From positions 150,001 to 182,000 of the forward strand of contig NW_008806276.1 in assembly GCF_000400465.1 (NCBI RefSeq): a DNA stretch of 32,000 bases, in the 5' to 3' direction. This stretch comes from Wallemia ichthyophaga EXF-994. Its lineage: Eukaryota > Fungi > Basidiomycota. A program made the position numbers and the translations under genes. A model generated the notes under the pieces. That model worked only from the letters and a program-made list of their open reading frames with translations, searched no databases and had not been told where the DNA came from. Shown here in pieces: positions 865-5,343 of the stretch (within the stretch, counting starts at the first letter, position 1; each line of letters opens with the position of its first letter).

Positions 865-1127
865 ATGAAATTCAACCAGTTTGTAAATATAATTGGATTT
901 TCTATTTCAGGTGGTGGGTGTGGTTGTGTATATGGGGGTATTTGACATGGGCTTATACACACCACAGTCACAGCAACTTGGTGCGTCTTGTTCGCAGATT
1001 TCGGTGAAAAAGAACACGTCTTCTCTGGTGTAAGTGGGGTGCTGTGATGTACGCCTATACCACATCTAACACGCTAAAGATACGCCGTGAATACACAAAG
1101 CAAGCGAATAAATTATTTGAGTTATAG
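865..1127 (+). CDS. Predicted 52-aa single-pass microprotein; exons 865-913, 968-1029, 1080-1127
   Basis: Introns 914-967 (GTGGGT..CACAG) and 1030-1079 (GTAAGT..CTAAC..AAAG) match the window's intron size and signals. Spliced product: MKFNQFVNIIGFSISGVTATWCVLFADFGEKEHVFSGIRREYTKQANKLFEL*. Absent from the ORF track. Confidence 0.7.
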
Positions 1128-3389: not shown

Positions 3390-5343
3390 TCAAATCATTA
3401 TCCTGTCCTCTATGTCATCGCGCACCCTCTGTATCCACGACTTGGCCGCCGATGCCAACCTCTCAGGATCAATATCGAGGTCGGGGACATTGCCCAAGAG
3501 TTGCTGGTTCTGTGCATTACCTGTGTTCGTTGGCGCTTTGTACACGGTAGGCGCGAAGTGTGTCGCCGCGTCAGCCATCATATCGAGGAATTGACGGCTG
3601 TTAAGGACTGTGTTCCCACCAAGGATAACCCTCGACGCACTTCCCTCTTTAGCCATCTGTTCATTAAGCAGCGTCACACTGCGAGCCTCTTCATAAGTCG
3701 TGCCGCCGACGATAAAGACTATCACCTCCTGCGGTCTGTAAGTATACACACTAGCATCAGGCTGTTGCTGCGTTGGCGAGAAAGGCGCCATGGCAGGATA
3801 GCTGCTCTCTTTTAACCGCCCCTTCATTAGCAGATCTACCGTTTGGGAGAGATGCGGAGTGTGCTGTGTATACACATTCTCAACCCCCTGTAATCCCTTC
3901 AACGCCGATCTGCCCCGACTGAAGAAATTGTCATTCATGAATAAATCATCCTGTCGCTTGTCCGCTCCGGCTAAGTTTAGCATCACATATACCAACGCAA
4001 CCCGATGCTGTGGGATGCCTTGCTGTAACAGTTGCGATACTACCGCCTGGATAGCATTCGATGGCATTTTCTGATAGCGGAGTGCATAGAGAATAGAGAG
4101 ACGCACTTTGCTTTCTTGTGGTATATCGGGGCTGTCTATCATTTCTTTGATGGCCTGGTGATTAGTCGTTAGTGTGAGAGCATATTCGAACTGCATATCT
4201 CCTTGTACACACCCTCAAATCCGATGAATGACTCTCATTGCTAGCGAGCGACTGCTCTAATTCAGACACCTGTAGCAACTTCTTATCATCAACAAGTTTA
4301 GATAGCTCCCCAATCAACGTAACGTGCTTGCTGACGTTGTTGCCTAGCTTTTTCATCTCCGGGTATGACTCAACGAATTTTTTCATATCGCTGATAGTTT
4401 CAATGTTTTTTACACTGTCATTCCCACCTATCTTGGCTTGATAATCACTGACATATTGCTTGACATTTGCACCCAAGTCACCAAAGTTTGCAAAAGCGTT
4501 GCGGGTGTAGAATGAGTCGTTGTCTGAAGTGAGAGATAGAAGAAGTTGCTTCTGAGAAGGAGAAATGTTGTCAAAAGCGCGTAAATCCACTTTATCATTT
4601 TCTAAACCGATCAAATCGTGTACCATTGCTTGATATGTCCATTGAGAGAGAAGTGGAGTGACAGGATCGTTTGTTCTGTCGCATAGGAGTAAGGTGGGGG
4701 TGGATTGAGAAGACCTAAAGTTGAATAGTTGAGACTCTGTATTGATATTGTGGGTAATTGAATCAGCCAATGATTTGCAGAGGTTTGAAGATGATTGGTA
4801 TCTAATGATTGGTTTGCGTTTGAGAGAGAGAAGGAGAGCTGTAAGTGAGTTTGTAGTTGAGTTCAAAGAGTGATTATTCCAAGCATCAGGGTTAGTTGAG
4901 TATAGATTGTGCTTCGTTGGAATGAAATTGAGTGAAAAAAGACAGTCACTGAGAGTTAAGTAGTCTAGGAACAACTCCTGACATTCCTTAACAACAGAGT
5001 AGGTGTCTGATGAAGCAAGAATCTCAATTTGATATTTGGTGAGAGTATTTGAGAAGTACAAGTAGTACTGCGAATAGAGTGGATTCGATAGTTCCAAGCA
5101 GAGGTTGTCTATGGATTGTGCAGTTGGAGTAACGAAGACAATACACTTCAAATGACTTATACGCTGTCTATTCCTATTACCAATCTTATCGATCAAATAG
5201 ATTTCCTTGTTGAGTATATTGGTTTGTGAGGTAATTGAACTTATGTAGCTTATCGTGGTGCTATCAAGTAAAAGCGATTTAATTCCAATGACGTCATTTA
5301 AAAGCTTATCTAAATAATTATGTGATGCCTCAATCAACTTCAT
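3390..5343 (-). CDS. VPS45: Sec1/Munc18-family protein Vps45; exons 5343-4213, 4154-3390; intron 4155-4212
   Basis: Motifs DRTNDPVTPLLSQWTYQAMVHDLIG, NVSKHVTLIGELS, VENVYTQHTP and IVFIVGGTTYEEA. The GTGTGT..CACCAG intron restores the frame. Confidence 0.95.

Follow-up and report, generated by a model that had tools for sequence, protein, structure and literature searches.

The gap between the kinase gene and AOS1

The window analyzed here is a 32,000-nucleotide (nt) stretch of the Wallemia ichthyophaga EXF-994 genome (contig NW_008806276.1, positions 150,001 to 182,000), and all coordinates are counted from its first letter on the forward strand. We focused on the gap between two plus-strand genes, a protein kinase gene and AOS1, in which a first-pass annotation made from the sequence alone had proposed a hidden three-exon gene for a membrane microprotein. 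The kinase is identified through Pkinase Pfam matches on syntenic gene calls; its open reading frame (ORF, 501-851) ends in a TAG codon at 849-851, 13 nt 5' of the microgene ATG. AOS1, which codes for the SUMO-activating E1 subunit with a ThiF fold, lies at 1170-2135, and its ATG is 42 nt 3' of the microgene stop. The spacer between the kinase TAG and the AOS1 ATG is thus 318 nt. From the evidence described below, we conclude that positions 865-1127 on the plus strand are very probably a genuine three-exon, two-intron gene for a predicted single-pass membrane protein, and that this gene is missing from current Wallemia annotations. The hidden gene is supported by purifying selection in four syntenic Wallemia-lineage loci.

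Exon 1 (865-913, 49 nt) starts with the ATG and holds 16 codons plus the first base of codon 17; it encodes MKFNQFVNIIGFSISG and the G of Val17, and it corresponds to the N-terminal half of a predicted transmembrane helix. Intron 1 (914-967) is 54 nt long, is in phase 1, and has the form GTGGGT...CAG. Exon 2 (968-1029, 62 nt) is entered in phase 1 and left in phase 0. Its product is the second half of the predicted transmembrane helix followed by a family signature, (V)TATWCVLFADFGEKEHVFSG, in which the codons at 997-1023 specify residues D27 to F35 (DFGEKEHVF), the juxtamembrane motif that defines the family described below. Intron 2 (1030-1079) is 50 nt long, is in phase 0, and has the form GTAAGT...AAG; the CTAAC that the first-pass annotation had pointed out as a branch point is present at 1066-1070. 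Exon 3 (1080-1127) encodes IRREYTKQANKLFEL, predicted to form an amphipathic C-terminal helix with Arg39, and ends in a TAG stop. Re-splicing 865-913, 968-1029 and 1080-1127 by script gave a product of 52 residues, MKFNQFVNIIGFSISGVTATWCVLFADFGEKEHVFSGIRREYTKQANKLFEL. The gene model, with junctions at 913/968 and 1029/1080, was therefore correct to the base, and the product is exactly the 52-mer as first written.

Both introns had been described as being of the local size. The kinase gene intron is 49 nt long and introns in Wallemia average 55-61 nt (PMC3849046), so the 54- and 50-nt introns do fit their surroundings. The kinase intron lies at 393-441 (GTGAGT...TTAAC...CAG) and interrupts the conserved APEIILG/LGWSYPCD region. 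An in-frame stop occurs at 844-846, 7 codons 5' of the microgene ATG, and the longest ORF from any single exon has at most 46 codons. The GC content of the window is about 0.36-0.59 per kb, mostly 0.40-0.50, values that bracket the 40-45% given for Wallemia (PMC3849046). Rfam detected no RNA family in 600-1400 on either strand. ORFs on the opposite strand were considered as genes and set aside, as they are short or antisense to AOS1 and unsupported.

An ORF assembled by splicing could be fortuitous, in which case the gap would be non-coding and would consist of the 3' untranslated region (UTR) of the kinase gene together with the promoter and 5' UTR of AOS1. We shuffled the 318-nt gap 300 times and counted the sequences that gave a two-intron GT-AG ORF of at least 50 residues with introns of 40-70 nt. 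Under loose GT-AG rules, such an ORF appeared in 85 of the 300 shuffled gaps (28%), whereas strict rules (GTRNGT donors plus a branch-like motif) gave none in 300. The frequency under loose rules favors the accidental explanation, as do spacers of 13 and 42 nt, which are too small for a separate promoter or terminator; the strict splice signals count against it. We conclude that the spliced ORF by itself is within chance, and that the splice signals and, above all, conservation exceed chance. Because 85 shuffles pass the loose rules, the gene call has to be decided by comparison with other genomes.

Orthologues in the Wallemia lineage

For the AOS1 neighbor, identity is 54% to the protein of Wallemia mellicola CBS 633.66, and 62%, 73% and 99% to proteins found in metagenome and Logan assemblies. 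W. mellicola (locus L001) and L004, a Logan contig, both retain the order EFR3, kinase, gap, AOS1, DHDPS, Sec1, methyltransferase. Parts of this order are retained in L005, which is a European Nucleotide Archive metagenome scaffold of a Wallemia-like fungus, and in contigs L026 and L027. The three-exon gene also occupies the gap between kinase and AOS1 in W. mellicola (L001/L002), L004 and L005. Its introns fall at matching codon positions, and the three products are MKFQFNRFINILGFSLSTVTATWCVLYADFGEKEHVFSNIRREYQKQVDKLLDL, MKFNQFVNIIGFSISGVTATWCVLFADFGEKEHVFSGIRRHYAKQANKLFEL and MRFNQFVNIIGFSVSSVTATWCVLFADFGDKEHVFSGIRRQYAKQVEKFLDPNT. A start of the form M-K/R-F is kept in all four Wallemia-lineage loci. 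Intron lengths vary among the orthologues (45-54 nt for intron 1 and 48-50 nt for intron 2), and exon 2 is always 62 nt. The stop codon falls at the corresponding site in three lineages, whereas in L005 it comes two codons later; three different triplets serve as the stop. These loci are not assembly duplicates of one genome, which the AOS1 identities of 54-73% exclude.

Wherever dN/dS could be computed among the four Wallemia-lineage loci, it was 0.018-0.14, and synonymous sites were near saturation (pS 0.58-0.80). The closest pair, the window and L004, differs at 23 sites, distributed 3/0/20 over codon positions 1, 2 and 3. Identity between lineages is 65-85% for the coding sequence versus 49-68% for the introns, and only 49-60% for intron 1. 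At a much shorter distance, the sister-strain contigs L026 and L027 (AOS1 99% identical) show 8 differences from the window across 501-2135. Only two of these fall in the microgene, 1050 T>C and 1077 A>C, and both are in intron 2; the latter converts the AAG acceptor to CAG, so that the AG is preserved. We conclude that the reading frame is under strong purifying selection. Together with strain differences that, within the gene, are confined to an intron, the pattern of selection indicates a translated, spliced gene rather than a UTR or promoter element. An accidental ORF would not be expected to show a 3/0/20 codon-position bias and dN/dS of 0.018-0.14 in four lineages, which is coding selection, beside introns that have decayed to roughly 50-68% identity.

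A fungal family with shared intron positions

An exhaustive phmmer search with the 52-mer against 1.84 billion representative proteins matched P0123 (74 aa, E 6.9e-5), P0124 (4.1e-4), P0125 (6.6e-4) and P0126 (9.5e-4). P0125 belongs to a Cryptococcus neoformans cluster that includes CNAG_06378, and P0126 is a Kwoniella protein annotated as 'transmembrane protein'. The top two matches, P0121 and P0122, were rejected as false positives because they are long repeat proteins, and a word-index protein search with the 52-mer gave zero candidates. A profile search extended the group to 28 proteins with E-values down to 1e-20, among which the named ones are all 'hypothetical' and lack a Pfam domain. 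Its named members come from Cetraspora pellucida (Glomeromycota; P0128), Entomortierella parvispora (Mortierellomycota; EMPS_03271), Microbotryum saponariae (Pucciniomycotina; P0130) and the Agaricomycetes Postia, Fomitopsis and Bondarzewia (P0135/P0138/P0141). Among the 'hypothetical proteins' that resemble CNAG_06378 are CNN01040 of C. deneoformans and IAR55_003100 of Kwoniella. In pairwise BLASTP, the Cryptococcus protein is 42% identical over all 52 residues and the Cetraspora protein 49% over 37, with E-values of 2e-13 and 7e-12. Protein homologues are thus present in eight named fungal genera other than Wallemia, a second line of evidence against an accidental ORF.

A scan of Joint Genome Institute (JGI) metagenome contigs added 16 loci, some with the motif exon only. 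Two of these contigs, with a GC content of 0.61 (L013, 612-743; L014, 621-752), carry an intronless homologue of about 77 aa with FADWGEKENVF, in which Asn replaces the near-invariant His (GEKENVF versus GEKEHVF); our guess is that they come from an intron-poor, GC-rich basidiomycete yeast.

An alignment of 17 sequences (window numbering) shows no variation at G29, K31, F35 and R39 and at least 90% conservation at D27, E32 and H33. The window protein agrees with the invariant and near-invariant columns at D27, F28, G29, K31, E32, H33, F35 and R39. The core of the family is a Gly/Ser-rich transmembrane helix followed by A-D-F-G-x-K-E-H-x-F-x-x-x-R. The first-pass annotation had pointed to a D-F-G-x-x-E-H-V-F-S pattern in small unannotated fungal proteins. 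The pattern is a real family signature, but in several genomes the proteins that carry it are annotated, as 'hypothetical protein', rather than unannotated. We identified no ascomycete or non-fungal member, and since the searches were of limited sensitivity, this is not a claim of absence. Literature searches by gene identifiers (CNAG_06378, CNN01040 and others) and by motif strings returned no paper. Taken together, these results show that the product is an unannotated member of a catalogued but uncharacterized fungal family that has no name, Pfam model or solved structure.

The annotated proteins of Cetraspora, Entomortierella, Bondarzewia and Microbotryum were mapped to their genomic loci. 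In the gene structure of the family, a phase-1 intron interrupts the transmembrane helix, and a second intron, in phase 0, comes three residues ahead of the invariant Arg. A middle exon of 62 nt that runs from phase 1 to phase 0 is found at all Wallemia-lineage loci and in Cetraspora, Entomortierella and Bondarzewia, where it encodes, as in the window, the second half of the helix and ADFGEK(E/N)(H/T)xFxx. The position of intron 2 is kept in every mapped homologue gene. Microbotryum shares intron 2 only, and its first intron is placed 8 codons further upstream than in the others. For the Microbotryum homologue (L006, 1501-2031), the annotation also includes a further 5' intron that has an odd GTCCCC donor and is perhaps an error. 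Many prokaryote-style ORF calls read through intron 2, running ...EHVFSPV-S... and later ...RRxY..., which places the same intron in further fungi. Thus, the homologues conserve both the motif and the intron positions, as a real gene had been expected to do, and the exon-intron structure is shown to predate the split of Dikarya and Mucoromycota. With intron positions in common with the four mapped genera added to the evidence for selection, the accidental ORF is already effectively refuted, and we consider its residual probability negligible.

The family members also differ in length. CNAG_06378-type relatives have 75-135 residues, with an extra N-terminal soluble segment of 30-60 residues, often containing a Y-x-R-R-V-like stretch, and a longer C-terminal tail of the form F-F/W-T-L-S-x-x-E. 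In contrast, the Wallemia proteins have 52-54 residues, begin at the transmembrane helix, and end about 26 residues past it without the tail; the Wallemia copies are also unannotated and squeezed between two genes. The N-terminal segment and the tail are absent from all four Wallemia-lineage proteins. Because they are absent or shortened in P0123 and P0141 as well, they are apparently not obligatory for the family. The Wallemia start coincides with the onset of similarity to P0123 (AKFGPY versus MKFNQF), and the in-frame stops 7 codons 5' of the ATG in the window, L004 and L005 argue against a missed upstream exon. Judged from these sequences, the Wallemia protein represents the family pared down to its core. 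This form would delimit the minimal conserved module of transmembrane helix, motif and amphipathic helix, which is convenient for experiments.

We also considered whether the neighboring genes could account for the conserved blocks. The distance from the kinase stop to the microgene ATG is 4-13 nt in four lineages, and the distance from the microgene stop to the AOS1 ATG is 33-52 nt. With spacers of 13 and 42 nt in the window, a microgene transcript would have to extend over both the 3' end of the kinase gene and the 5' region of AOS1. The blocks might therefore be alternative terminal exons of the kinase gene or leader exons of AOS1 instead of a separate gene. An ATG 4-13 nt past the kinase stop in every lineage, AG dinucleotides just upstream, and the formal possibility of a kinase isoform made by read-through or alternative splicing are compatible with this idea. 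In all lineages, however, the kinase stop and the microgene ATG and stop are conserved, and an in-frame stop precedes the ATG in the window, L004 and L005. Moreover, similarity to P0123 begins exactly at the Wallemia start, and homologues outside Wallemia stand alone among unrelated neighbors. Their flanking genes differ in every mapped case, so that the gene is independent rather than an extension of the kinase gene or AOS1. We judge that terminal or leader exons have only a very slim chance of being the correct explanation.

A separate gene could still be translated by reinitiation, from a bicistronic mRNA that it shares with the kinase. Basidiomycetes are reported to make polycistronic transcripts, and the 4-13-nt spacer has been kept in four lineages that are saturated at synonymous sites. 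The genome is also extremely compact, at about 74% coding (PMC3849046). Compaction alone, however, accounts for the spacing, W. mellicola and the other lineages have no spacer sequence in common, and homologues elsewhere are monocistronic. We conclude that a bicistronic mRNA is possible but not needed in a genome that is about 74% coding, and we regard it as unlikely.

The first-pass annotation had expected standard annotation to overlook the microgene, and the National Center for Biotechnology Information (NCBI) gene calls of W. mellicola indeed contain none between the kinase gene and AOS1. In the published transcriptome pipeline for W. ichthyophaga, novel-transcript candidates were drawn from intergenic regions that exceeded 150 bp and lay 200 bp to either side of annotated genes (PMC3849046). 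As we read this criterion, a gene 13 nt from its neighbor could not have been reported. On this reading, the microgene was missed because no exon carries an ORF of more than 46 codons and because of the 200-bp criterion. A literature search on unannotated small ORFs in Wallemia gave nothing relevant. On the Logan contig L004, a prokaryote-style AOS1 call (P0002, 4001-5116) has 371 aa versus 321 aa in the window; it starts within the microgene, 5' of the real ATG at 4112, and this over-extension artefact masks exon 3. The annotated lengths of close orthologues are discordant: P0126 (Kwoniella newhampshirensis) has 212 aa, and P0156/P0158/P0159 (Cryptococcus deuterogattii) have 102 aa versus 131-133 aa in sister strains. 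Such discordance suggests that annotations which do include this small multi-exon gene often model it wrongly.

Several observations weigh against a functional gene. Its support comes from genomic comparison; we looked for spliced transcripts among Logan contigs, and all AOS1-bearing contigs were colinear with the genome. The 52-mer and a Wallemia-containing profile retrieved no Wallemia protein among 5.8 billion protein clusters, a result that also fits a gene left out of annotation. At intron 1, the window has a weaker donor (GTGGGT) than the GTGAG found in the orthologues (GTGAGT or GTGAGG). In L005, intron 2 (937-984) ends in TG and not AG (...CTAACACTATCTTTTG/ATTCGT). The L005 frame after this intron is still conserved, IRRQYAKQVEKFLDPNT, and use of the next AG would yield a truncated ...FSGLKSF; the TG may reflect a non-canonical acceptor, an error in the assembly, or recent damage to this copy. 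Weighed against selection and shared intron positions, these points leave the three-exon gene as the very probable reading. Wallemia genomes, with only about 4,900-5,300 annotated genes, would gain a real one, and the locus offers a concrete case of how short multi-exon genes in compact genomes slip past both ORF-based and transcript-based filters.

Predicted architecture, function and comparison with known systems

The proposed single hydrophobic helix was borne out by prediction. The best 19-residue Kyte-Doolittle window scored 1.4-1.66, with 1.66 at residues 7-25 for the window protein. An AlphaFold2 model of the window protein (mean pLDDT 74) has a helix at 2-28, a loop at 29-35 and a second helix at 36-51. 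For the full-length Cetraspora homologue (103 aa, pLDDT 85), AlphaFold2 gave an N-terminal helix, a transmembrane helix and two short C-terminal helices. We therefore predict a single-pass membrane protein with a transmembrane helix at about residues 6-26. This helix contains the small residues G11, S13, S15, G16, T18, A19 and T20, and relatives have GGWxxG-like runs. A helix composition rich in Gly, Ser and Thr favors helix-helix packing. The C-terminal helix is amphipathic (hydrophobic moment 0.43 over residues 36-52), with I38, Y42, A46, L49 and F50 on its hydrophobic face as read by eye. The basic tail that had been proposed is basic, but only mildly so, with 4 K/R versus 2 D/E in residues 36-52. 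In longer relatives, again read by eye, basic residues precede the transmembrane helix and an acidic stretch follows it, a pattern that suggests an N-terminus facing the cytosol or matrix.

From this architecture, we can outline how the protein might work. With its small residues, the helix would pack against other transmembrane helices, either those of a partner or those of its own copies. The near-invariant turn A-D-F-G-x-K-E-H-x-F would lie at the membrane surface, followed by the short amphipathic helix with the invariant Arg, so that the charged K-E-H turn and the amphipathic helix would be placed at the membrane interface. Our best inference is a putative small accessory, structural or assembly subunit of a membrane complex, based on its size, a packing-type helix, and a near-invariant charged interfacial motif maintained over hundreds of millions of years. 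A nine-residue motif that is near-invariant and intron positions that have been kept since before the divergence of Dikarya and Mucoromycota imply an important, unstudied function. As a rough split among compartments, we place the mitochondrial inner membrane slightly ahead of the endoplasmic reticulum (ER) or secretory membrane, neither commanding a majority, with the remainder elsewhere. The moderate hydrophobicity is more typical of mitochondrial inner-membrane proteins, but the longer homologues, read by eye, start without an obvious presequence. A more specific proposal is that the family is an unrecognized subunit or assembly factor, of ancient origin, in one of the core membrane machines of an organelle, such as a respiratory-chain or ER complex; we consider this conceivable but doubtful. 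If it were true, the family would have been overlooked because it is tiny, split by two introns, and unrepresented in model ascomycete yeasts, and the 52-residue Wallemia form would be the minimal functional module.

Other results speak against these assignments. The transmembrane hydrophobicity is borderline, and the idea of a subunit draws only on what small single-pass proteins have in common. Scanned with Pfam, the 52-mer, four longer homologues and 17 members gave nothing meaningful, for the 52-mer and the 17 members even at E-values up to 10. Sequence searches of the Protein Data Bank (PDB) with the 52-mer, a core profile and a broad profile returned only Drosophila NDUFC2, at E 0.39 with the core profile. 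Foldseek against the PDB gave no match for the 52-aa model and, for the 103-aa Cetraspora model, one mouse complex I chain at E 8. None of the fungal subunits of complexes I, III, IV and V, TOM or TIM in the PDB matched the family profile.

The family could also be a diverged form of a protein that is already known, either SMIM4/UQCC5 (UPF0640) or a complex I accessory subunit such as NDUFC2. SMIM4/UQCC5 (UPF0640, PF15114) is a human mitochondrial microprotein and an assembly factor of complex III. The SMIM4 sequence used for comparison matched PF15114 at E 4e-34. The layout is similar, a transmembrane helix followed by G-x-(K)-E-x-aromatic...R-R, and hhalign brings the SMIM4 motif into register with that of the family. 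The hhalign probability is, however, 0.3%, and on that ground the kinship to SMIM4/UPF0640 that this resemblance had suggested was rejected. The Drosophila NDUFC2 chain is the sole PDB match of the core profile and has VFSGI in common with the family, yet it is lost with the broader profile, and NDUFC2 has two transmembrane helices versus the one predicted here. Similarly, the sole Foldseek match is a complex I chain, but single-pass subunits of complex I are abundant in the PDB and are hence expected as top chance matches. No Pfam match to UPF0640 or NDUF_C2 was found in any of the 17 members at E up to 10. We conclude that membership in either of these families is improbable, and we return to a small membrane subunit of a separate family as the best inference.

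Homology to SMIM4/UQCC5 is undetectable, and the matches between the family and respiratory-complex accessory subunits are at chance level (E 0.39 and E 8). As predicted for the family, SMIM4/UQCC5 is a single-pass protein, of about 70 aa, with a conserved G-x-E-x-F-Y-x-x-Y-R-R directly after the helix; as a small assembly factor, it illustrates how the family might function. Respiratory-complex accessory subunits such as NDUFC2 likewise combine a short helix, a transmembrane helix and an amphipathic helix, as the family is predicted to do.

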